Shown one piece after another: positions 8,851 through 64,000 of a stretch of 64,000 bases of DNA. The DNA lies in contig OZ176053.1 of NCBI GenBank assembly GCA_964247055.1, positions 2,356,001 through 2,420,000 on the forward strand, written 5' to 3'. This DNA is from Paragordius varius. Taxonomy: Eukaryota; Animalia; Nematomorpha. Made by a program: the position numbers and the translations under genes. The notes beneath the pieces are model-generated. The model made no database searches, was not told where the DNA came from, and worked only from the letters and a program-made list of their open reading frames with translations. Each line of letters opens with the position of its first letter. Within the stretch, counting starts at the first letter, position 1.

Positions 8851-10299
8851 ATTATATGAAAGTTATCATCTTGAAGTTGGAAATAACATGCAGGAAAAAA
8901 TGTGTTTTATAAATGATTAAATCAATGCTATGATAGATATTTATACTAAAGAATTTTATTAAAAGTTTATAAAAATAATTTAAATGTCAAAATAAAAATG
9001 CATAATTTACATATAATTTAAAAAAATAATTTTTTTTTCAAAATTTTCAAAGAGCCACTCAAAATTTTTAATGAGCCACTCAAAAACCCTGTTGGACACC
9101 CCTGATCTAAAGGAATGATTGTGATTAACGGCGTGAAAAGATAACACGCCCTCAGCTAGTGCCAAATTCTTTTCTTCCTCTCCAAAAGCGGTTTTTCGAA
9201 AAAAATCGCTCATTTTGTAAGATGATGCCGCCATAACTAAACATTTTTTATGTTTCTGTGTTTCTATATGCTTTGTAATATCATGCTTGCCGCCATGTGC
9301 TAGGGTGAATTCCCCCTCGCATATAAGACATTTAACAGATGATTCATTCTTTGTTTTTTTAATAAAAGGAAAATTTCATTAATTCATCGTTTTTTATTAC
9401 AACCTCTTTTTGTGCGCATATTTATAAACTACTATTAGTATAACAAATATTATATTACCTTAATTTTCTGGAATAAACGTGTAAGGTACCGATTTATGGT
9501 ATCAATTTGTCTTTTAATCTAGAGATTTGTGGTATTAACTTGGATTTTTGATAATAATGACAGTAGTAGTAGGAAGGAAAGTGTATAATCATATGATATA
9601 AATTCGAAAAAAAAATATTTTTTATTCAAAAATAAAAAATTTAATTTAAAATTTATATAGATTTTAAAGATGTTTAATAATAAAAAAATTAAACGGATAA
9701 AAAAAATTTATTTCTATTTAAAAATTTTTTTTATATAATCGTGAAAAAGCGGGACGTCTGGTCACCTTAGCTTTCCATAAAAACTTTTAGGTATATTATA
9801 CAATTTCTTTTTGAAAAATATAAAATTGTTAAATCCTCATCTCAAACCTTTTGCCCCCGTTTATTTCTCTAATTTTTTTAATCTCTGATGCAATTGGTAA
9901 ATGAATGCATATTTTGGTTAGAAAATGTAAATAATTAACTTAAGTTTAAAGTTTTTGTTTACCAACAAAAACTTGATATATTTTAAATTAAATATGACCT
10001 GTTGGTTTCTATCGTGTTTTGGAGCTTTCCCAATTTTAGACGTTAAAAATATGATCCTTTTTAAATGTTAATTTTTTAAGTTTTGCCTAAAACAATTTAA
10101 TCTTAAGATTAGCTCTATATAAAACTATGCCAATCTGTCATTCAGGGCAAAAAATATCATTAACTGCTATAAAAATTTATAAAATTTTACAATCACAAAT
10201 AGGATACATTTAAAATATTTTCACTCAATCTCAGCATCGTTGCTCTTATATTTTGGGAGAAATCTATCTTAAAGGGTAAAAAATTTGGGAATTTAGTAG

Positions 10300-12588: not shown

Positions 12589-12601
12589 TATCTCCTTATC
12601 C
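12589..12601 (-). other. Polypurine tract
   Basis: GGATAAGGAGATA immediately before the 3' LTR TG; overlaps the pol stop codon. Confidence 0.75.
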
Positions 12602-15600
12602 AAATCCGAGCCGATCTGGTGCTTTTCTTTCCCTAAGAGGATATATCCTTTCAGGTTCTTTCTCAGTTGTCTTTTCCGTTCTTATTTCAACCTGGGTGTC
12701 TTTCTCGTTTTCTTTTTCTTTGCTTGGTTCCTCCCCCACCTCCCGATTATTGGTTGTCATCTCTTCATCTGTTTGGTTTATCGTTACATTATCCTCCTCC
12801 TCAACGCCGTTCTCGACTCCTGTCGGCCGTAATTGATCCGCATGCTTGCGAAGTGTTCGATTTCCATCTTTAACCGTGTACGAGAGTACCCCTGTTCTCT
12901 CCAAAATTATACCTTTTCTCCACCCTGAATTGATTTCATTCTTTATGTACACTTCTTCGTCCGGTCTAAAAGTTTGATTAGGAATTATGTCGTCCTCTAA
13001 TTGTTGTGCGGGTGTTTCCCTAACCCAAGAGAAGGGGGTATTAATCTGTCTTTTCAGAAATAAATTATACGGGCACTCTTTTGTGGCGCTATGTACGGCG
13101 GAGCGATAACCCCATAACACTTGGTTTATTTTTTTGTCAGGAGTCAGCTTGGAATCCGTTAACGATTTATAGTTTGCTTTTAAGGTGTAAATGACCCGTT
13201 CCATTAGCCCATTTGTTCGTGGATGATAGGGGGCGCTAGTGACATGTTTGATGTTTGCTCGTTGCAAGGTATCTTTAATATCTTTCGATGCAAAATATGA
13301 TGCATTATCGGTAACTATCATTCGGGGAAACCCGTACCTTACACACCAAATTTCCAACCAATGTATTATGTTTGCAGAGTTAACAGTTCTTAGCAATTCG
13401 ACTTCAACCCATCTGGAGCTACTATCGATAGCTACTAACCAATACAACCCATCTATAGGACCGGCAATATCAAGATGTATCCTTTCCCAGATACTCGTAT
13501 TAAAATTCCATTTGTACGTTGGATAACTTTTTATGTTATTCCGGTTTAACTGACACCCCATACAAGATCTCACATAACTTTCAATATCTTGGTTTATACC
13601 TGGCCAATAAACCCTTGCCTTGGCAGACTCTTTCATTACATTAGCCCCCGAATGTCCAACATGCAAAAATTTTAACGTTTCATTTCGCAACGCCTTGGGT
13701 ATAAACAGACGATCGCCCCAATACAACAAACCATATGATTCTTGTATTTCGTTTCTTATACTCAATACCGAATTTAGAATTGGAGCTGACCAATCATTAT
13801 GATGTAGAGCCGATTTTAATGCCATCAAAAACTCATCCTGTAAAGTATTTTCTTTCATTCGCTGTACGCTTAAGTTGTCAGTTGTTAGAAAGTTGATTTG
13901 CCTGGGTTGCTCTTCAACTTCCTCAGTCTGTTCTTCATACGGTAGACGAGATAACCAATCCGCTAAATTTTCCGAACCATTAATATATTGTATAGTAAAA
14001 TTATAATCGGCTGTTCTGAGTATCCATCTTACTAATCTACTATTGTTAATATTACTTAGATCTCTCTTAAAACCAAACAACTTGATCAGGGGTTTATGAT
14101 CGGTTAGTAATACGAACTTTCTGCCATACACAAACATTTTAAATTTTTCTAGCGCATATAAAATTGCCCTTGCTTCTTTTTCAATTACCGAGAAATGTTG
14201 TTCTGCCTTCGCACATTTTCGAGACGCAAAAGCTATCGGCCGTTTTCCCTCACGTGTCATATGTGATAAAACTGCTCCGAATCCGTCATTAGATGCATCT
14301 GTTTCCAACACTAACGGAAGGTTCGGGTTAAACGGTATTAGACATAAGGCATTACTCACCAACAGTTTAGCTTTATCAAAAACCCTCTCTTCTTTTGTCG
14401 ACCAACATCATTTCTTAGAACCTGTAAGCGCATGTAAGTCCGCGATTGTAGCATGCAAAGACGGAATAAAACGAGCGTGAAAATTTAACATTCCCAAAAA
14501 AGACCGAAGTGATGTTTTATTGGTAGGTGTAGGACAATTCAAAATTGCTTTTACTTTTTCGTTATCAGGTTTAATTCCTTTGTCTGAAATTATATATCCT
14601 AAGTATGACACTGAGGAACGAGCTAATTGGATTTTATCCTTTTTTAATTTCAAACCCACAGCAGCTAATTTGTTCAACACTTTTTTCTAAATTATCCTTA
14701 TGCTCCATTACCGTTGTTCCACTAACAATTACATCATCTAAGTAAACCGCTGTACCTGGACAATCTTTTAATAACTCATCCATAATTTGTTGAAATATCG
14801 TGGGTGCACTAGATATTCCAAATGGCAGTCTCTTAAATCAAAAAAGGCCTATATGTGAACTAAACGTGAGTAAATGTTGATAATCTTGGTGTATCGGCAT
14901 TTGCCAGTAAGCTTCTTTTAGATCTAAGGTCGTAAAAACTTTTCCTTGCCCGATTTTAAACACTAACTGATCAAATGTTGGAATCAGATGATCTACAGGA
15001 ACCAGACTTGGGTTTAAAGTAACTCTAAAATCACCACATATGGGAATATCGTTATCATTCTTTTTAACTATTACCAATGGAGTTACCCAGTCAATTCGTG
15101 TTTGCGAGGGGTTTATGGACTCTATAATACCCAGACTTTCAAGCCTCTTTAATTTACTCTCCACCTTAGACTGAAGCGGAATAGGTACCCTCCTGGCCGC
15201 AAATCTTTTGGGGATACTCCCTTTTTTGAGAAACAACTTGATGGGTGATCCCTTGTAACACCCCATACCCTCACAAAACAAATCCTTAAATTTATTCAAT
15301 TCCACGTAATTAACATTTTTTACACATACAGGCTCTGGAAATCTGCATTCAAAACTTTTCATCCATGGTAACCCAAAAATGTTACCCCAATCATCCCTAG
15401 TAACCATACATTCCAACTGTTTGACCATACCATTCCATTTCACATCTACAACACATTGTCCCATCACCTCTACACCTTGCTGGTTGAACCCAACTATTGG
15501 ACCCGCGGGAGCTAAGGTCGGCCTCCCAATCTCCATCCACGTGCTCTTCCCAATCAATGATATTTGAGCTCCGGTATCGTACAACATCCTCACCCAATGG

Positions 15601-16345
15601 CCATTCAGACTTGCTTGCGTTCGGGCTTCATTATTATTATTGTTACCATTCAGTATGTTAACGCGCCGGCAACACCTGCCAAAATGACCACGTCCTTTGC
15701 ATCGGTAACACTCCTTGTTTGAAGCGGGACACCAGTTGATCGCATGCGCGTATCCACATTTTCCACATTTTTTTCTTATCATCATAACCTGCCTATTGTC
15801 GGGACCCTGATCAATCAAACAGCTGTCCGCCTTTTCGTACGCCATTGCCATTTCTACCACCATCTCCAACGTAACCGGTTTCCCATCAACCATTGCATCT
15901 GGAAATTTTGTGAACAGATCTATTTCCAATCTTTTGAGTTGTAACCCTCCAACAAACCCATCTCTGATTCTTAGCATTGCATCTTGCCCAAAGTTGCACC
16001 GGGTAGCACATTCCTTTACTCGAATCAAAAAATCCATCACTGATTCCGTGGCTTCCCTCCGGAGTTGCGTAAACTGGAACCTGGCTGCAAACACATTGTA
16101 TGTCGGAGCAAATATTTTTTTCCCAGCTGCTACCAAAGCATCTCAGCCCACTTCCTCTAACAGTACGGGATAAAAGAATTTCTTCAACTTTGGAATATGG
16201 GATAGACCAATGTAGGCCAATAGTAAGTTCTTTTTGTTTCGTCATCTTCTGGAATTAATTTCACTTTTAACATTCTCTTTATATAATCGATATAATCATC
16301 AAAGCTAGTTGCGGGATCATAAACTTCCAGACTTAATTTCTCCAT
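12596..16345 (-). pseudogene. gag-pol (Gag, protease, RT, RNase H, integrase) with 3 in-frame stops and 2 frameshifts
   Basis: Start MEKLSLE at 16345; protease YDTGAQISL; RT LDLKEAYWQ, LPFG and YLDD; RNase H ETDAS..TDHKPL; integrase HVGH..CMGC, HLDIAGP, VTDNA, GLMER. TGA at 16143-16145, 14838-14840 and 14408-14410; frameshifts in A-runs at ~16231-16235 and ~14681-14686. Confidence 0.93.
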
Positions 16346-23012: not shown

Positions 23013-25984
23013 TTTTTCTTTCTTTAAACTAAAAATGGCCAAGGTTATATTGGGCCAAAAATTGGGATATTAAATATACGAATACAAATTTTATGCAAAT
23101 AATTAATTTAAACGGTTAAAAATAGATTATATATATTATATATGATGAATAATGTGTTTTATTAGCTGAATGAACGCCTACCCTACTTTGTACTAGCAAA
23201 TTATGACTTGCAAAAATTTTAATATAAAAATATATCATGCATTTTTTTAAACCAATTGTACAAATATATGACCCATTAAAATTAATAAATGGATAATATA
23301 TGTAAAAACTTTAAAATTTACCTTTATTTCGTAGAGGTTACAGGAATTTATGTCAAAATAATTAATAATGAAAAAAAAAGATTTGTATTTTTATTTAAAA
23401 TGGTTATTGTTTGTTTTTGGTTTGTTATATTTTTTTGTTTTTTTGTATCTGCTCTCTATTGACAATCTGTTTTGTCGCAATTACATATATAAAAATTGCT
23501 TTTAGCGTATAGTCGAAGCGATATATACGTTAACTTATTATTGGGAGAAATATATGTATTGTGTATATCTTCTCTATGTTTTTGGCCCGAAAAAAAATCA
23601 ATAAAGATATGGCGGTGGTTAAAAATTATTGAGACAAATCTCAAATTATCATTATACTAGTTTTGCAGGTAAAACATTTGCAACAAATGCATAGTTTTTT
23701 ACCTTTGGTAAAAATTGGCACGAATTGCATTATAGTATGTGATATTTTCCGTAATAACGGACTATATTACCTTTTTCAGCCAAATTTGTATAAAGTATAT
23801 GCATATACTATATATATAGATATGTTAAATTGATAATTTATTGGCATAATATTGCATATATTGGTTTATTTAAGGCTAATAGTTTGTTTGTACATCCAAT
23901 TTTTTAGATCGTAAAATAATACACATAAATTGGCAATAGTTAATATAATGTTATAATAATATACATTGTATCAAATTGGAATTGTATACCACAAATTTGG
24001 GTTAAAATTATTTCTACCTATTGAATTCATTGAAAATAACTTCTCACCTAAATATTATTGCCCTACTGTTTTATACAAACTCATGGGAAATTTTGCTGGC
24101 AAAAATCTCATTGTTTTTAGATTGTGTTGCTGATAAAGCTATTAAATTATTTAGTAAGTTGTACAGATATCGATCATTATGGTTAAACTTTGAATTAAAC
24201 ATTATAAAATTTATAAAAATCACAGGCGTTAGAGATTACATATATACAAAAATAAATTTTAAAATTGAGGTTGATTACATTTGCTAAGCAAATATATCAG
24301 AATAATGTAGTAAGGATTATCATTAAAAAAATAAAATAATCTTAAAAATGACGTATATTTTGTACATGCTGTCCTGTCCGTGTGATACAGTCAACACCAT
24401 CATTAGTGAATTGATGTTATATGTTTTCTGTAATGAAAACAATAAAAAACGGTCTACCAACACGATTTTTTATGGATTAATGGAAAAGCGCCAGACTAAA
24501 TATTTGGCTTTTTTACGGGAAGAATGTAAACCATGATTCGATCAAACCTGATACAAGATTTTTGAGTAAAATGCTTAAAAGTCATTTTTTATGGTGCCAT
24601 GTTAAACAGATAGTTTGCACAACCCATTTATACGAACCCGCGAACCTAGGAATCCATAAGATCAAGGAGGTTTTTAAGAGCTTAAAGCCACTTTATTTGC
24701 ATATGGTATTTTGCAGAGGTAAAACCCTACACAGCGGGTAAATTAACTTTAACACTTGACATAACCTTTGTTTTAATACTGATAATTTTTTAAATATCCT
24801 CTTGAATTTTTGCAAAAAATATTAATTTACGTGGGCAGCGGGTAATTATAACGGCTAATCTAAAAATAAAAGCCGGCTATGTTGGGTGTATTCGCAAAAC
24901 ATAATATATTAGAAAAATGGGCAACATTTTTTTAGCAAATTCTCTTGAGCCATTTATCCTAGTGATGCCTACCAAAAATTTTAAAGGGCCGAAAAAATAT
25001 TTTTTTCGTCTCAAGAGCTATGATAAAAATTAAAATAATAAAGCTGTACGACATTTTTTCAGATATTTATACTCCAAACTTGTACATAAAAAAATTTAAT
25101 AAATAATTCAAAGCCATAAAGAAGCACTTTAGGGCCGCGGTTTAAGTACCATTGTTATATATATATATTATATACATATATTTATGTTTATTAACTTTTT
25201 TATTTTATAGATTACCTTAATTTAGATTTTCAATGGTCGATAGTTGATAAACATCCCATCGATTCCTTCAAATAAATTAACGGAAGATAGGACTCAGATC
25301 TAGATGCGATTGATAAGAAAGTTAGGTTCAATAAAAAGTGTTGTTGGTTGAATCCATCCTGTTTTAACTTCATTATTCTAATTTTCATTAGGCCTATTTA
25401 GCAACTAAGTACACATTGGTTCCCATCGAAAAAGGACTACAATGCTCTACAACAGGGGTGTACAATATAAATGACATCGCGGGCCGCATTAGAAATATGT
25501 ATCGGCATTATCGAATATTTTGTTAGATTTTAACATAAATAAGACTGTAATGCCAATTCAATATAACGATTTTTCTAGTTTGTTGCCGATTCGATGAACA
25601 CATTTTGAAACTTTGTTTAATAAACAATTTTACCAAGATTTTTGGAGCATAATTATGCCAAGTTTTTTTACGGGCAACACATAATGTTACGGAAAACCGC
25701 ATATGGCTCTCTGGACTTGTGCTGGACACCACTGCCCTAATACATACCACAAAAATATTAAAATTGCATCGTGATGAATTGAGAATATATGGCCGAAACC
25801 CCGTCGTCAATTATTAGAGTTATCTAGGTTAGCAGACATTAGAAAAATGTCAAATAAACAATAAATATCTATATAACTGGCAGTCCAATAAATAATTGTT
25901 GATTAATATTTGATTCCATCGTCGCATTCTATTCATTTATAACGTATTATTTATTTTATTTCAAATCTTCATAAGATAGATATA

Positions 25985-41100: not shown

Positions 41101-41971
41101 TATACGTTTAAACGCTAAATATAATTTTCGATATGTATATTATTTTTACAGGTTCGATTTATTTATACAGCGAAAATACTTTTACACACTTTTTCAATAG
41201 GGTATATTGTATCATTTGAATAAATTTCATAAAAACATAAACATTACATACTTAATTTTTAAATAAGCATTAATAAAATGATTTTACACCAGATGTAATT
41301 ACCTCCTCGACCAACATTTCAATCATGAGATTAAGACTATCTCGCACAGTTTCCTCGCCGGCTTTTATGGTTAAATGAGGATATAGTGGCTTTTCATAAG
41401 CCGAATCAATGCCCGTGAAACCTTTCAAATGACCAGCCCGAGCTTTTTTGTACAAGCCTTTAACGTCTCGTTTCTCACAAATTTCTAGCGGTGTATCGAC
41501 AAAGCATTCAAAGAAGGCCAAGTTTTGTTCTTCAAAAATTTTTCTGGCATAGGCACGATCCTAATATTTATGGTTACAATATTGTGTTTACCTTTTCAAA
41601 AGGGCTAATGAAAGCCGTGATAACAATTATCCCACCATCAGCAAAAAGTTTGGAAACTTCTGAAATTCTACGGATGTTTTCTTCTCTATCCTGATTGGAA
41701 AAACCCAAATCTTTGTTTAAACCTTGTCTAATGTTATCACCGTCAAGGACATAGGCTGAATAACCCTTTGAACATAAATACTCTTCCAAAGCAAATGCCA
41801 ACGTTGATTTACCAGAACCGGAATAACCTATAATATAAATTTAGTGGATAAACCTGTCAGCCATATACAACATCCACGAAATTTTCCTCTAAGTCCCATA
41901 ATTTGTCCACGTTTATCCCGATCAACATTGTGATCATGTCCATAGAGGGCAAGACCTTTGGTATTATCATC
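35436..41971 (-). CDS. PAPSS: Bifunctional PAPS synthase (APS kinase plus ATP sulfurylase); start exon not located
   Basis: Exons 41971-41854, 41827-41592, 41560-41303, 41019-40906, 40635-40524, 40189-39972, 39600-39469, 38555-38426, 37503-37361, 36183-36058, 35669-35436 give 606 aa plus stop. Motifs: P-loop [61 protein letters not shown]. Confidence 0.97.
36385..36538. mobile_element. Solo right-arm fragment of the 25985-27255 foldback family in a PAPSS intron
   Basis: atccttaatttt..ttgccc..gctggtcataagctat..ttgcacacagtg|TA matches ~27100-27257. Confidence 0.75.
38179..38403. mobile_element. Hairpin MITE in (TA)n, copy 3 (PAPSS intron)
   Basis: ctatttacaattcaaattcaccc ... gggtgaatttgaattgtaaatgg, with (TA)n on both sides and a duplicated terminal segment. 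Confidence 0.7.
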
Positions 41972-44009
41972 CTACACATTATAATGATAAAAAACCATAA
42001 GAGCTTTATATTTCATAGCACAATACGTATGTGTGTTAGGTGAAAAAAATAAAATGTTTAAAGGTATTAATTACAAGTAAAACTGGGTATATTTATATTG
42101 TGAAACCAGAGAGCGCTAGTTAAATTTCCACACGTGTTTACTTAAGCAAAAATGCGATATCAGTAGTTTTTTTACCATAGCCAAATTTTTTTGTTTACAT
42201 TTGGGTGGGGTTAGTAAATAAAACATTGACGCAAATATAATGTTTGTTAATCGTTTCCGTACAATTTTTTAATCACATATCTTTTATAACTACGCAAAAC
42301 ACCATTTTTATATCGTTATCTTTTATTATTTAGGCAAGTATAGTGATGTAATTAGATGTAAAATTTAATTGCATTTTTTTATTTACTTCAGTTATTTATC
42401 TCTAATATTAAAACGGTTATAGATTGACTTAAATTACATATTTAGATAGTCAAAAATGTGTCAGTATACCGCCACCGGTAAATTATATCAAGTAATGCTG
42501 TAGTTGAAGTCCGTGCTCCCAAATATTTTCTGTGACTATGATTGATTTTAACAATAAGTAGCAAATTTTTTACATACATGTATGTGTAAAATGCATGAAA
42601 ATATTCTGTGGCATAATATTTGTACATACAATCGCGTATTATGCTTATAATAAGTCTTGTTTTCGGTTTAAATATACAACTCTCTTACAATGGATAAACG
42701 GTACATGATTAAAAGATATACTACCTCAACTTTTGGCTAAAACAAAACCATATTTTTACAAAATTAACATTTTTAGATGTGGTCTCCGAAATCTCAAATT
42801 TTTGGCCTCCACCAATTTAATTAACTTTAAAGCAAAAAACCTGAAATTTCACTATAATTTTAGTAAAATTAATGTTTCTTTAACAAATTTTCTGAATAAG
42901 TCTACATAATTGAGAATCACCTAAAAATATTGTTTTATTGTTTTTGCTATTTATGTTGGAAATCTATAAAAATATTTATTAATTGCCATATGGCAGCCCG
43001 TCGGATTTTTCGAGTCGCACAAACCAATGTAGGACACCCCTAGTTTAAAGTATTATTCTCACCCTTTACTGAACAAATTGTGGTTATAAATTAAAGTTTT
43101 GAATCAACACATGAATATTAAAAATTAAATATAAATATTTTACCAATTTATATCTATCAGCGTAACACTTAATTACCTCTTAGGCTAATTATCTACCATA
43201 GACGATTTGAATTTTATTTAGGATATGGAAACAAATTTATAAATAGGAAATTGGCTTTTTAGACGCATTAAAAAAACTTAACCTCAAAGTATGGCTACAT
43301 TCGAATGAATCGCTTAAAATAGTGGCATATAAATAGCTTATATTTAAAATCCGATAATTGATATTAAAATTATCTGTTTATTGCGAATTATCTAAATCTT
43401 AGACTTAACAATAACCTTTATATCAAATATATAAAATCAAGTTCGTAATGATAAACCTATTCCAGTCAAAAGCATATTTTTTTTAAAAAAAGCAACAAAA
43501 GCAACAATTTTTTAACCAAAAACAACATTTTTTCCAAGCAAACACAACATTTTTTAACCAAACGTAATATTTTTCATTCAAACGGAACGATAAATGTTGC
43601 GTTTGGTTGAAAAATGTCGCGTTTGATTAAAAATATGTTGCTTTTTACCGAAAAATGACATATTTAGTTAAAACATATTTATATTTCAATAAATTTTTAT
43701 TTATTTACATTATATTTATATAAAATCTTTCATTTGAAACAAATTATAATTGAACACACGATAAAAAGAATATGCAAGTTTCGAAACTCAAAATAAGTTC
43801 CGTTTTCAATAATTTTAAAAAATGTATATGTGTGTGTATGTAAAATCTATTCAAAATATGATTTTCCAATCGGTCAAAATGTAGCTGTTCTTTCGATTAA
43901 AAGTATTTTTACTATTTTTATATATTTCCATTGATTCCCTAATAATTCTATTCTTGTGATGGTTAATAAGGGATACGATGTATATCATTAAAATTAATTG
44001 AGTGCCCAT

Positions 44010-56919: not shown

Positions 56920-59900
56920 ATGGTTCAACAAGATATGCGTGACATATATTTTAATTGGTTTGATTATTTACTTAAACCAACTGAAATTGATTTATACCTT
57001 AAAAGCCAATCAAGTTAAAAGTTTATCATATTTTAGTCCATTCCATAAAAATTATATTTAATCAAGCCCTTAAACTTATTGTAATTAAGATACCTGAAAA
57101 GGAGCCAAATTTTATTCCAAGTATATTTTAAATAATGTTAGGTGATTTTGAGAGAAATGACGCAAAATATTTAAATTATTACGTGTTAATCAACAAAATC
57201 CTATGCATTCGAAATTGGGATATAAAATATCTAATCAATAAGTTATTACTCTTATTATTTAAGTGTTTCACCCATATTTATATACTCGTTAGTTGACTTT
57301 CTTACATTATACTCTGACAAAAATTTATTTGATTTACCAAAGATAAATCAGATATCGGAACCAACTTCCTTATTTTTTGCCATATATTGTAATGTTTTGT
57401 AAGTTTTTTCCCATGATAATGTTTATTAGATTCATACAATTGATAATTCAAGATAGCTTCCCAAAGAAAGATGATCGAATATATTCATTTCCAATGTAAT
57501 ATAATTTTTTTTTAAAAAAATTACTTTTTAATCTTATTTTTACTCCTTAGCCCTGAACAGTTGGATCAAACCTTACATGCAAACCTAAACAAAAAATTTA
57601 TTGATCAAGTATGCTTTTATTGCATAATAATTTATGACAAATAGGTTTTTAAACAAAAACATTTAACCAAAAATGTGCTAATGTTTAAGTTAAGAAACCA
57701 ATCTCTAGTTTTTTATATATCAATTTTATCAATATAATTTAGCTAATTTTACGCAAAGAATGTATTGTGACATGGTTGGAAAATGCATTGGATTACCTTT
57801 CCACCTCCATTACATCAAATGACAGTGATAAACAAATTATTATATCACGTCCGGATATTGGATATTTCAAAATTTTTGACACTTATATTTACAAGAATTT
57901 TGTCGCTTGCCGTCATGATAAATCGGAACTATATAATTTTACTTCAGTTATAACTGATTCAAATTTTGTTACAAGTTTGGACCTTGCGACAATTATTCAA
58001 AATATTAATGTCATCCTAGCAAAATACTATTTTTATGCTAATAATCTTGACAAATGCAAAGCATATTTGCTACAAATCAAGGAAAATAACTTTGTTACTG
58101 ATCTAAAGGAAAATAAAAAGAAGGTGTGATCATTAAATTATTGCACTTTATACCAGGGGGTATCCAACACAAAGGCTACGCCCACCGTATTTTGGAATCA
58201 AAACTTCCGACGGGCCTCATTTACAAAATATATGGGAATTAACAAAAAATTTAAGATTACACTAAAGACCCTGTAAAAATAACTGTTATATTTTACAATG
58301 GTTGTTAGTTTATCTCCAAAATTCGTAATGACTTATTTAGAAAATTTGTTGAAAAAAAATGAATTTTACCTAGATTTTGTAATATTTTTTATTTAAAATT
58401 TATTGCTGGCGGCAAAAATGTTTTGGTAGTCCGAATGTTGGCCACCCCTGCCCTATACTAAAAATTTAAACATTATTTTGAGAGTTTTTAAAATTTTATT
58501 TGCCCTCAGGAATATGCACTTTATTGGATAAATTTTATTTTTTACTGATTGTTTTACCATAATTAAGTTTTTTTAAAAAAAATAATTTTTATTTTAAATA
58601 ATATGATATATATTGAAAAATATTTTTTATGCCGATTTTAACAAAAAATTTTGACATTTAATATAAAATTTATTATTTGTTATTACTAACTGTAAAATTA
58701 CTGTAAAATTATTAATTTTTTTTATTATATTATTGAATGCTTTATTAGAGATATATTTTATATTATTTAATATTAAAATGAATAGGAAAATGATACAGTT
58801 TTTGGGTTTCCGCTAAATTCGATTGACTCGTCAGAATTTTTAGGGTATTGTTTAGCTTGTGGCATCAACGATATAGAATATAAACCTTCATCAAAATTTT
58901 TACTGAATCACTCACCATTATACAGCAATAATATAAATTTTGCGACACTTACGTCCCAAGTATAAAATATATAAATAGTTTTTAAATTTAATTTAATTTT
59001 TTAAGCTTTTTTGAAATATGTATTTTATAAAATAATAATAGGAATGGGTTGACATACTGGAAAAAGATTTGTTATTTAGCATTGGAAATAACGATAATGA
59101 AACCAAATTTAATTTGGAAACTTATAATTATGGATTGTCGATTTGTTTGGATGAAAATGTTACCACAAATTCCACCGTATTGCCGCAAGATGAGTAGTAT
59201 TTAATTTTTTATTTGTCCAAAACTTTTATAATCCATTTATTTTATTGGTCAATATATATTAATTTCTAATTTTTTTATATAACACTTTACGAACTTATGG
59301 GGTCATCTTATATCCTAGAGCTTTTTAAAATTTGTATTCTCAAAAAATATTTATTAAGTCGAATTTAAAATGTTTGCTCTAAAAAATAAAATCAGTTGTA
59401 TATTCTCATCTTAAACTTTTTCACCGCCATTTTTTTTTAATTTTAATCGGTATTACAAGGCAAGTAAATGCATAAATAGACTAAATGCATATTATGATCA
59501 TTAATCTTAATAAGTTTTCAGCTTATATTTTACCAGCAAAAACTTTCTTGATTTTAAAATCAGCTGTATTTTACAATGTGTTTTTTTTGTCCGAATTTCA
59601 GACTCTGGAAGTTAAAGCTGTAAAAAAATTTAAGCTTTTTTTCATCTATGTTTAATATTTAAATTTTAACTAAAATAACTTTCAAAACAGTAGTCTTTTT
59701 ACACGATTGAGCTTTGGGATATATAAATACCTCAAAATGCCATCGCAGACAAAAAAGTGAAAAGGTCATAAAGTGTTAATATATATGAAATGTCCAGTAT
59801 ATTTATATATATATATATATATATATTAAAGTTTTAATTTGGAAATACTTAAATAATATATATTATGTAGTTTTATTATAATGCATAGATTTTCCCCACT

Positions 59901-60038: not shown

Positions 60039-60102
<64 letters not shown>

Positions 60103-63100
60103 CTAAAAGTGTTTTTTATAAAAAAAAATTTTTTAATTTTGGGCAAGTATGATTAAAATAATATGTGATTATAGAAATCCAATTATATATATATAGAAAT
60201 ATATATATGTTTTACAATTTATAAATTAATAATTTTATCCGACACCGAAATTTATTACTTTAAGATAACTTACTTATAATCGTCTTATTACATTAAATTT
60301 TGAAAAATAAAGATTCCCCTATTTTAAACTGCTTGTTATAGTTAAATTTTCCCATCAAAAAATAATTTAAAAAAGAACATGTTTATGGTTTTTAGATCAT
60401 TAATAATATAATGGACACTTTGATTGAAACACAAAAATATCAGCTCATTATATCTTTGCTTACGAAGATGAAAAGTTCTATCATGCATTTATTATCAAAT
60501 GTTTGGTTGTTATTACATAAGATATCGCCGCCTAAACATCAACAAATAAACTCTGAATACCAGGAACATTTACAAAAATTTATTGATAAATTCACCAAAT
60601 TGAAATCAGTCGATTCAAATACAATTGAACCGTTTAAAATTAATCATTTTATGGTGGAGATCGGCGATTTCATTTATAAACTTATAAATCAAATTTTATT
60701 GCTACCAAAATATGAACAAGATTTACAAATGGATTCTGCTATGATAGCCTCTGAAGATAAATCATTCACATCAGGTTTTTACAGTTAAAAATATTTTGAA
60801 ATTATATATTATTTCATATGTTTCTGAAATATTTTTGTTTGTTGAAACTTATAGATTTTTAGGGTTTGAGATTGGGAATAGAGATGTTGTACATTGTAAC
60901 GCATGATTAAATTTAAGAATTATAAGATTATAGATTAGGGGCTAATACATTACGTGCAATTTAGTGATCCATAATTTGCAAAAATATGCTTAAAAATCTT
61001 AGTAAAATCGATTTTTCACAAACAATTTTTTTGGATAAAAGTCTATCTAATTGGCAATGAAGTAGAAAAAAATATTATATTTTGTGTTTCCATTTTGCAG
61101 TCATGTTCGAAATCTAATAAAATATTTATTAATGACCATATATATTTCTAATGAGACTCCCCCCCCCCCCCCCCAGAATTTTTGAGTTAGAATTGCGGCC
61201 CCAAAACCATTTGTTTTCGATACCCATTTTGAAAGACAAAGGAACAGAGTGTTTTTATAAAAAAATATAGGGTTAATTTGTCATTGTTTAATTTTTGATT
61301 CATGTTTTAATACTTATATTTCCTTAAATAACCCTTAAATTCAATAATTTGCGCATATATAAAAACAGTTGTTTATATATTACAATCATGTTGTTTTCTC
61401 CCTCCGTTTTAGATAACATTTCAGTTATGCAATTGAAATATCAACTTATAAATTCCCAACAACCTAATGTTATAAAGGATATCATATTAAAGTTAACTAA
61501 TACATACCATTGTGATTACAATGAATTGATAGCTAATCCTGACTTACTTAATGTAAAATGTTTAACATTACATTTTTATTATCCTCAAAATATATATATA
61601 ATTTTATACATGTATACAGAAAATTTTAGAGTTTAATTTTGAATATAATATAAACACATAAAGTTTAAAGATAAAATTTATTTTTTTTGTGAAATATTAG
61701 ATTTTTCTAGGATTATTTTGAAGTATTTTGCAATATGAAATTATTTTTAGCTTAAAACTTTTCTATTTACAGTATTACACTTCGATTTTTGGTTATATTA
61801 AGCAATATTTTACCAAATATCAAATTTATGAATGATATTATTAAGATTTTTAATAATAATGAATTAAAGTTTTTGCAATATTGATTAGAACAATATTCCG
61901 CAATATTTGTTGAGTACTTTATTAACGTTACCAGCTGGTATTCGGCGTTCATATCTCCATCTTTTATTAGCCAAAGCTCGGTTATATCTACATAGTCAGG
62001 TAATGAAATTTTTATTTTTTAAAAAAATTTTATAATTACATATAATTTTTTTAGAAAATATAATATTCCATTGCAGTATTAATTTACTGTATATTCTGTA
62101 TCTATATATTTATAAAAATAGAAAATGCTGGCTTTGTGATCTGTTTCCGGAAAACCGGTAGACCCATTCAAATCCAAACATTGAAAAAATATAATTATTA
62201 ATGAATGCCCCAATAGCTTCGCGCTTTTTTTAAATTAGGCCCCCAGTTCGGGCCCACTCCGTGTATAAAACGGGTTTTTTTGAAAACATAAATCCACAAA
62301 AATCGTGTCTTTGAGACATTTTTCCGGAGAACGTGTTGGACCATTTAATTTCAAATATGATTTTTGTTTACTTATTTTCGATTGCGCCGAACATAGCCGA
62401 GTCACTTTTTTTAATTTCGGCCCTTTTTACCCGCTACCCCCGTAATATGCCATTTTTTCAAAAAAACAAAATCAACAAAAATAATTTTTTGAATCTATTT
62501 TTCCTTCAGGTAAACAATATATTAGTATGAATGCACCGTTTTAAAATTCTCATGAGATCATAGCTATTAAAAAATGTTTCGAAGTAATCCACATATGTGG
62601 ATCATTTCATTGTCCCTTTTTTCAAATAAGTTTGAATTTTTTAAATAATTATGATATTTATAATACCGTTAACATTAAGTTTTATGTTTTACAACAAAAC
62701 ATTTGTCTTTTAGCCATAGTAATATATTTTAATATATTTATTTTGTATATAATGTTAGGCTAGTTTCATTTTTATAAATTATGGTTGTTTGTTCGATTCA
62801 TAACTTAAATGCTAATAAACTATATAAAATTGATATATACCTTTAAAATTCCTCATAATATAAAAATAAAGTTAAGACTTGGGCACAGCTCAGTGCTTAG
62901 ATTCAAATTGGGGTAGTTGGATACCCTAGACTTGTTTAAAATTAATTATATCAAAAAGTATGGAATAAATTGAAACCATAACATTATTAAACCGAAATAT
63001 AAACTTTAATCAAAATACTTGATATTACTTATTCAAAGGTAAAACCCAAAGGTAATAATGTAACCAACATGACATGGGTATATAACCTAAATATAAAATA

Positions 63101-63957
63101 TTGCAAAATATACCATTTTTTTCTGTTTATATTAATGTTAATAATTTTAATAAAAAATAAACTTAATTTTAGCCTTAGAATCAAATATGCACTATATTTT
63201 GCAAAAATATTGTAAAAAATGGCTTCGAAGTAGTTTGAAAATAAATTTTATTTAGATATTGTGGCTTATTATATAATTTCCAGGATAGTAGCATAAAAAT
63301 AGCTACCGTTTCTTTCTGTAGTTTTTAAAAATATCAACTTTAATATTGTCTGCGGTATTAGATACCCCAATTCGAATCGAAGTGGTAATGAAAAATGCAT
63401 TAAGTGGAAAAAAATTATTAAGTGTTATTATTCTGACTCAAAAAACTATCGAAATATCGTGGAATAATCATGAATTAATTACACAGAAGATTAATAATTA
63501 AATTGAATTTTTAAAATAAATTGTCAACATGTTTGAACGCTTTAAATACTAGGAGGGTTTTAACACATTAATTACCTATATAGTTAAATAAAATTCAATT
63601 TTTACTCAAAATCTTAAATTATTCTTTCGTATTTTACCCTAATATTAATAGATATGAAATTAATCAACCATATTGATTAAAAATTATATATATATATAAT
63701 ATCTCATAGGATTTTGAAACTAGCCTTACCCTACTACAAGCCTGTGAACAGGAGTTAGTAACGTTTCAGGAAACTTATAAAGCTGCAAATAGTCAGAAAG
63801 ATGTGTCACAAGTACACACGGATCCCTTGTTAATTAGTTCTTCACGCCTTTGTAAACTTATTCGATGGGAAATTTTGCTGAATCATATCCAAAAACAATT
63901 GTTAACGTGCGAAAATATGGATAATACCAACCAAAAATGTACTATATTAACTTCCAA
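56920..63957 (+). CDS. INTS8: Integrator complex subunit 8, 5' part; continues beyond window end
   Basis: Exons 56920-57013, 57037-57120, 57142-57241, 57264-57398, 57430-57495, 57551-57608, 57743-58123, 58786-58959, 59042-59193, 59889-60036, 60396-60774, 61413-61552, 61889-61999, 63710-63957. Motifs NWFDYLL, NWDIKYL, IIQDSFP, FLGYCLAC, QLKYQLI, LLLAKA and DFETSLTLLQAC are collinear with recalled human INTS8 CWFEFLL, KWDLDIL, IVQSSFP, LAGYCQAC, QLEHQLI, ILMAKG and DFSHAKQLFAAC. Confidence 0.88.
58154..58450. mobile_element. hAT (Buster-type) MITE in INTS8 intron
   Basis: CAGGGGGTATCCAACA ... TGTTGGCCACCCCTG; degenerate TSD CTTTATAC / CCCTATAC. Confidence 0.75.
60042..60102. repeat. (TA)n microsatellite just after an INTS8 donor site
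   Basis: AT run with one G interruption. Confidence 0.95.
62101..62629 (+). mobile_element. Internally deleted, 3'-truncated copy of the 53565 Helitron
   Basis: Same A|TCTATATATTTATAAAAA start and ggctttgtgatctgtttccggaaaaccggtagacccattcaaatc block; jumps to the 3' region and lacks the hairpin and CTAG. Confidence 0.8.
62900..63384 (+). mobile_element. TTAA MITE, copy 5 (5'-truncated)
   Basis: attcaaattgggtagttggataccc ... gataccccaattcgaatcgaagtg. Confidence 0.72.
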
Positions 63958-64000
63958 GTATGCAGTTTATTAAATTTATTTTTTGATTTTGGGTTAGTTT

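Follow-up and report, generated by a model that had tools for sequence, protein, structure and literature searches.

Candidate spliceosomal micro-introns of 21 to 31 nt at the 5' end of a gene in Paragordius varius

It has long been believed that animals lack introns shorter than 30 nt. A locus of Paragordius varius raises the question of whether four consecutive segments of 21–31 nt, each breaking an otherwise open reading frame, are introns at the beginning of a protein-coding gene. Two further questions are attached to it, namely which protein the gene encodes and whether the in-frame stop codon in the only segment of 3n length reflects selection by NMD.

The window is the whole stretch of 64,000 nt that was analyzed (G000:C4:2356001-2420000), taken from an assembly of 110.5 Mb in 44 contigs. 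The GC content of the window is about 25% overall, with the exception of an island at 12–16 kb. This island, the only GC-richer one in the window (36–40% GC), is occupied by a Ty3/gypsy-type retroelement at 12599-16142 on the reverse strand. One ORF of this element carries RT_RNaseH, Integrase_H2C2 and rve domains, and the ORF upstream of it carries an aspartyl protease domain. Rfam detected no RNA genes in the window.

Gene model and tests of the four junctions

The initial annotation placed four consecutive micro-introns of 23, 21, 22 and 31 nt within 57014-57429, followed by introns climbing to 55, 134 and 662 nt. The coordinates and lengths of the micro-introns proved to be exact, and the climb in length was confirmed from the sequence. 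The exons decode under the standard genetic code. The features of the gene model are listed below.

56920-57013, forward strand: exon 1, with an ATG at 56920 and an open frame that reaches back to 56872; the WFDY motif of the N-terminus lies in this exon
57014-57036, forward strand: micro-intron 1, 23 nt, GT-AG, phase 1, 17% GC; retention leads to a TAA at 57016
57037-57120, forward strand: exon 2, 84 nt
57121-57141, forward strand: micro-intron 2, 21 nt, GT-AG, phase 1, 14% GC; in-frame TAA at 57129-57131
57142-57241, forward strand: exon 3, 100 nt
57242-57263, forward strand: micro-intron 3, 22 nt, GT-AG, phase 2; retention leads to a first stop, TGA, at 57294, 31 nt past the intron
57264-57398, forward strand: exon 4, 135 nt
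57399-57429, forward strand: micro-intron 4, 31 nt, GTAAGT donor, phase 2; retention leads to a TAA at 57400
57430-57495, forward strand: exon 5, 66 nt
57496-57550, forward strand: intron 5, 55 nt, 13% GC
57551-57608, forward strand: exon 6, 58 nt
57609-57742, forward strand: intron 6, 134 nt
57743-58123, forward strand: exon 7, 127 codons, predicted to be all-helical; relatives not detected
58124-58785, forward strand: intron 7, 662 nt, of which about 300 nt (roughly 58146-58455) are a dispersed repeat
58786-58959, forward strand: exon 8, 58 codons
58960-59041, forward strand: tentative intron 8, 82 nt, placed by frame continuity only
59042-59191, forward strand: tentative exon 9, placed by frame continuity
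60396-60785, 61328-61633, 63710-63970 and beyond the window: candidate later exons, possible only

Introns 1 to 7 all begin with GT and end with AG, and their phases are 1, 1, 2, 2, 2, 0 and 0 in order. When the seven introns were excised, the eight exons joined into 1092 nt, corresponding to 364 codons with zero stops. Intron length increases toward the 3' end of the gene. The four micro-introns have the same make-up as the two in PAPSS described below, in which GT is followed by A or T, the body is T/A-rich and the end is TAG or AAG. Each of their sequences is unique within the window, their GC content is 14–26% compared to 25–33% in the exons, and micro-intron 2 is the only one of 3n length among introns 1 to 4.

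The repeat of about 300 bp in intron 7 (58146-58455) has at least 156 candidate copies in the genome of P. varius itself. The 40 copies that were scored showed 67–78% identity and were located on contigs C1–C7. The repeat probably represents an ancient element, of MITE- or SINE-like type, by which intron 7 is lengthened, and it conforms to a pattern in which the 3' introns are laden with repeats.

To examine each junction, every GT...AG pair of 15–60 nt was listed whose removal left an open frame from one flanking exon to the next. At each of the four junctions, the noted micro-intron was the sole short GT-AG solution of this enumeration. The only other solutions were two longer segments of 53 and 58 nt, which used a later AG and lost part of the next exon. 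No exon of the gene has a detectable homologue, so the support for these junctions comes from the open frame and the splice signals, unlike that for the junctions of PAPSS described below.

The longest frame that allows up to four GT-AG introns of 18–35 nt was then computed by dynamic programming in the 751-nt region. With 0, 1, 2, 3 and 4 introns, the frame reached 69, 90, 130, 158 and 180 codons, respectively. Dinucleotide-preserving shuffles of the region (n = 300) with four introns gave 65 ± 17 codons with a maximum of 137, and none of the 300 reached 180 codons. Among genomic windows of the same size, 180 codons or more were reached in 30 of 754. Most of these 30 were long unspliced frames (transposons and long exons) or likely genes, and a handful, including PAPSS, reached 180 codons only via micro-introns. 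A codon-usage model scored the exons of the locus at about zero and did not separate them from background.

A homology-backed control for introns of this size was provided by the PAPSS gene in the same window, where two micro-introns interrupt the APS-kinase domain.

41828-41853, reverse strand: PAPSS micro-intron, 26 nt, within the P-loop region of the APS-kinase domain
41561-41591, reverse strand: PAPSS micro-intron, 31 nt, within the APS-kinase domain

The three PAPSS exons that flank these two introns were searched separately against the sequences of solved structures. They matched human PAPSS1 (1x6v_B) at residues 32-58 (E = 6.5e-7), 61-136 (E = 1.5e-29) and 138-225 (E = 3e-26), and positions 59, 60 and 137 of PAPSS1 were covered by the split codon and unaligned end residues. 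Excision of both micro-introns neither gained nor lost a residue compared to human PAPSS1. Since these junctions are residue-exact, introns of such size are real in the P. varius genome.

An identical 23-nt candidate micro-intron was also seen twice in another region of the same contig (G000:C4:5000001-5200000), at 24652-24674 on the forward strand and at 9311-9333 on the reverse strand of that region. The two copies are 15 kb apart, and their inverted arrangement suggests an inverted gene duplicate.

Identity of the gene product

The gene had been assigned to INTS8, a subunit of the Integrator complex. This assignment was not borne out by searches made exon by exon, in which no exon matched the Pfam profile TPR_INTS8 or the solved Integrator chains, and a fold search with exon 7 gave no match. 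Pfam gave no relevant match to the exons, and TPR_INTS8 (PF25756, 488 positions) was absent at E-values up to 1. When the same profile was scanned exon-wise over the whole genome, nothing was found at E-values up to 10. Since an exon-wise scan is weak, the missing TPR_INTS8 match is compatible with a divergent INTS8. Furthermore, seven exon pieces of the gene were compared to the Protein Data Bank sequences at E-values up to 10, and zero Integrator chains were returned.

Exon 7 was searched with phmmer against 1.84 billion representative proteins, and no credible relative was obtained. Its sole match, P0001, is a tandem-repeat protein in which one weak stretch of 40 residues was matched five times, and it was judged to be spurious. 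In the ESM Atlas, exon 7 fell into generic TPR clusters at 0.80. AlphaFold predicted an all-helical model of five helices with a pLDDT of 62.6, and Foldseek found no match to this model with an E-value below 0.5. With an Atlas recognition of 2573 and five predicted helices, exon 7 looks like part of a real protein. The supposed C-terminal piece downstream of the window fell into haspin-kinase-like clusters of the Atlas at 0.87 with low recognition; therefore, it is also uncertain how far the gene reaches in the 3' direction.

Several features of the predicted protein resemble INTS8. Several motifs may occur in the same order as in human INTS8. The prediction is all-helical and weakly TPR-like, and the gene is long and has many exons. 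The N-terminal WFEF motif of INTS8 recruits PP2A (PMC8091971), and a similar motif composed of W, F, an acidic and an aromatic residue, WFDY, is found at residues 13-16 in exon 1, although it has little weight as four residues only. The candidate differs from INTS8 in that a sequence, profile or fold match was obtained for no exon.

Among the other Integrator subunits, INTS2 was found in the genome (G000:C5:8352968-8355925) and INTS5_C was not. Since INTS2 is encoded, the Integrator complex exists in this genome. The INTS2 match lies in one open frame of 1131 aa that is apparently intronless, in contrast to the intron-rich candidate INTS8 gene.

Two alternative explanations were weighed against these results, one for the introns and one for the identity of the gene. 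If the locus were a degenerate pseudogene or a frame left open by chance, or if the assembly carried small insertions here, the four segments would not be introns. The lack of a homologue for every exon and the indistinct codon usage agree with such an origin. It would, however, have to produce four separate frame breaks, each with a single short GT-AG segment to bridge it, a frame length that the shuffles never attained, 364 codons that stay open through seven introns, and introns identical in appearance to the homology-backed ones of PAPSS, 15 kb away. Such an origin is therefore quite improbable, and the four segments are very probably genuine spliceosomal GT-AG micro-introns near the start of a gene that encodes a protein, as judged from the sequence.

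The second alternative is that the gene encodes a different, lineage-specific helical-repeat protein rather than INTS8. The weakness of exon-wise searches for a divergent, AT-biased protein, the presence of INTS2 and the resemblance of WFDY to WFEF speak against it. It is favored by the absence of TPR_INTS8 matches in the exons and in the genome-wide exon-wise scan, by the seven exon pieces without an Integrator chain even at the most permissive threshold, by the lack of relatives of exon 7 in the very large protein set, and by the Atlas clusters, which were generic TPR for exon 7 and haspin-kinase-like for the supposed C-terminal piece. A lineage-specific protein thus has about an even chance of being the product, and the identification as INTS8 is tentative, with a probability slightly below one half.

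In the explanation that we propose, the four segments of 23, 21, 22 and 31 nt would be U2-type (GT-AG) spliceosomal introns that interrupt the first approximately 160 codons of a real, fast-evolving helical-repeat protein gene. They would be members of a genome-wide class of micro-introns that is clustered at the 5' ends of genes and coexists with ordinary introns and with long, repeat-laden ones. Splicing would proceed by intron definition, in which the 5' and 3' splice sites would have to be recognized together with the branch point across so short an intron. Any micro-intron left in the transcript would cause a premature stop, and NMD could remove such a transcript.

In-frame stops in 3n introns and NMD

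The initial annotation pointed out that the only 3n intron, which is 21 nt long, carries an in-frame TAA, and it read this as a Paramecium-like NMD signature. The TAA was confirmed at the position given above, in phase 1. The signature was not supported, because it consists of a single intron for which the chance expectation of an in-frame stop is 0.48.

Retention of any one of the four micro-introns resulted in a premature stop. It lay within the intron itself in the case of micro-introns 1, 2 and 4, whereas for micro-intron 3 it was located 31 nt downstream. A profile search of the genome detected core NMD factors, namely UPF1_Zn_bind at two loci and Upf2, and UPF3 was not detected in the genome. 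Since retention gives a premature stop and UPF1 and UPF2 are encoded, NMD could act on the retained forms. However, a premature stop is near-automatic at 25% GC and is therefore no evidence of selection. The two UPF1 zinc-knuckle loci (C1:5917851-5918458 and C1:5941468-5942484) share one strand, with 24 kb between them, and are possibly a tandem duplicate; one of the two matches contains an in-frame TAA.

Six micro-introns of the window supplied the base composition for estimating the chance expectation. An in-frame stop occurred in 48% of simulated 21-nt phase-1 introns, and when the six micro-introns themselves were read in three phases, a stop was found in 10 of the 18 combinations. Two properties of the introns also affect how stops in 3n introns are to be read. 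A stopless 3n intron reads as coding sequence and is therefore hidden from open-frame reading, so every 3n intron found in this way has a stop. In addition, the micro-introns mostly end in TAG, and a phase-0 3n intron with this end closes on an in-frame stop by construction. A third candidate micro-intron of PAPSS is of this kind (41972-41995, reverse strand, 24 nt, 3n length, phase 0), its sole in-frame stop being the acceptor TAG. Thus, an in-frame stop in a 3n intron can be a product of intron structure and not of selection.

A wider scan for 3n introns covered 284 kb in all, that is, the window plus 220 kb. The counts of GT-AG candidates flanked by open frames were flat from 12 to 90 nt and showed no peak at 20–31 nt. 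The counts remained flat under all of the filters tried, which were 40-codon flanks, tight frame closure, AT-rich composition and consensus ends. Because of these flat counts, the 284-kb scan had no power on the question of 3n depletion. A chain search returned real clusters mixed with spurious ones inside transposons. Within the window, (TA)n microsatellites at 59800-59830 and 60040-60110 were open in several frames and inflated the scans, and they were filtered out.

The Pfam table of the Ras family for the whole genome implied many more introns of about 19–31 nt. Three stop-free matches in this table were longer than the profile span, by 8 codons (C3:8184099-8184332), 9 codons (C2:7965188-7965373) and 21 codons (C5:8097580-8097987). 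These extra segments may represent 3n micro-introns that lack a stop, or they may be true insertions in the proteins.

The remaining alternative to a chance origin of the stop is that selection keeps the in-frame TAA in the 3n micro-intron so that the retained form stays visible to NMD, as in Paramecium. In Paramecium, TAA encodes glutamine and TGA is the sole terminator, in contrast to the TAA seen here; since TAA is a sense codon there, the parallel with a TAA-bearing intron is loose. The likeness lies in introns of about 25 nt and in the fact that the ribosome would otherwise have no means of noticing that a 3n intron had been retained (PMC5014332), and also in the in-frame stop of the 21-nt intron. 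The depletion of 3n introns and the excess of stops were established in ciliates from thousands of introns (PMC5014332), compared to one intron at chance expectation here. Thus, the TAA in the 21-nt intron, the two NMD factors and the ciliate precedent favor selection, and they are set against a sample of one, stops in more than half of the intron-by-phase combinations anyway, an open-frame ascertainment that conceals stopless 3n introns, the closure of phase-0 3n introns on their own TAG, as at 41972-41995, and the three stop-free Ras-family matches that are possibly stopless 3n introns. Selection for NMD visibility is accordingly a minority possibility, with roughly one chance in three in our estimation.

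The broader claim would be that the genome, which belongs to neither a myxozoan nor a dicyemid, contains a distinct 5' class of introns of 21–31 nt beside kilobase introns and that NMD selection purges the stopless 3n members of this class in a ciliate-like manner. This combination is rather unlikely. If it were true, P. varius would be the first animal with introns shorter than 30 nt in which such an NMD-policed class is seen, and error-prone splicing of these introns would be indicated. Selection by NMD is a hypothesis that a single locus cannot support.

Comparison with other short-intron animals

Among 51 animal genomes, introns shorter than 30 nt were reported only in myxobolid myxozoans, with medians of 22–27 nt, and in Dicyema japonicum (Hadjez et al. 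2026, PMC13644364). The P. varius locus resembles these animals in its GT-AG introns of less than 30 nt, which are comparable to those medians, and in its reduced splice-site motifs, with little beyond GTa ... AG. Moreover, short introns cluster beside other short ones in both, and validation came from conserved positions in conserved genes, as with PAPSS here (PMC13644364). The difference is that myxobolids and Dicyema have compact genomes in which almost every intron is tiny, whereas introns of 134 and 662 nt, the latter with a dispersed repeat, follow the micro-introns in P. varius.

The position of the micro-introns is more similar to that in neodermatan flatworms. In Gyrodactylus salaris (about 32 nt) and in tapeworms, intron lengths are bimodal, and introns of the short mode predominate at positions 1 and 2 of the gene (PMC4040987). 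As in P. varius, the short mode exists beside introns of many kilobases and shows the same 5' polarity. However, the short mode of these flatworms is about 32–36 nt compared to 21–31 nt here, and their micro-introns occupy one or two positions compared to four consecutive ones here (PMC4040987). The locus therefore joins two patterns, namely the intron lengths of myxobolids and Dicyema and the intron position and coexistence with long introns of flatworms.

A further genome with tiny introns that are confined to the 5' ends of genes and lie beside long introns would help to reveal what determines the minimum size of an intron that can be spliced, and it would also help to show why intron length depends on the position in the gene. 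We infer that gene finders that accept no intron below 30–40 nt would break such genes at their first exons. These broken first exons could in turn lower the apparent completeness of the gene sets in such genomes.
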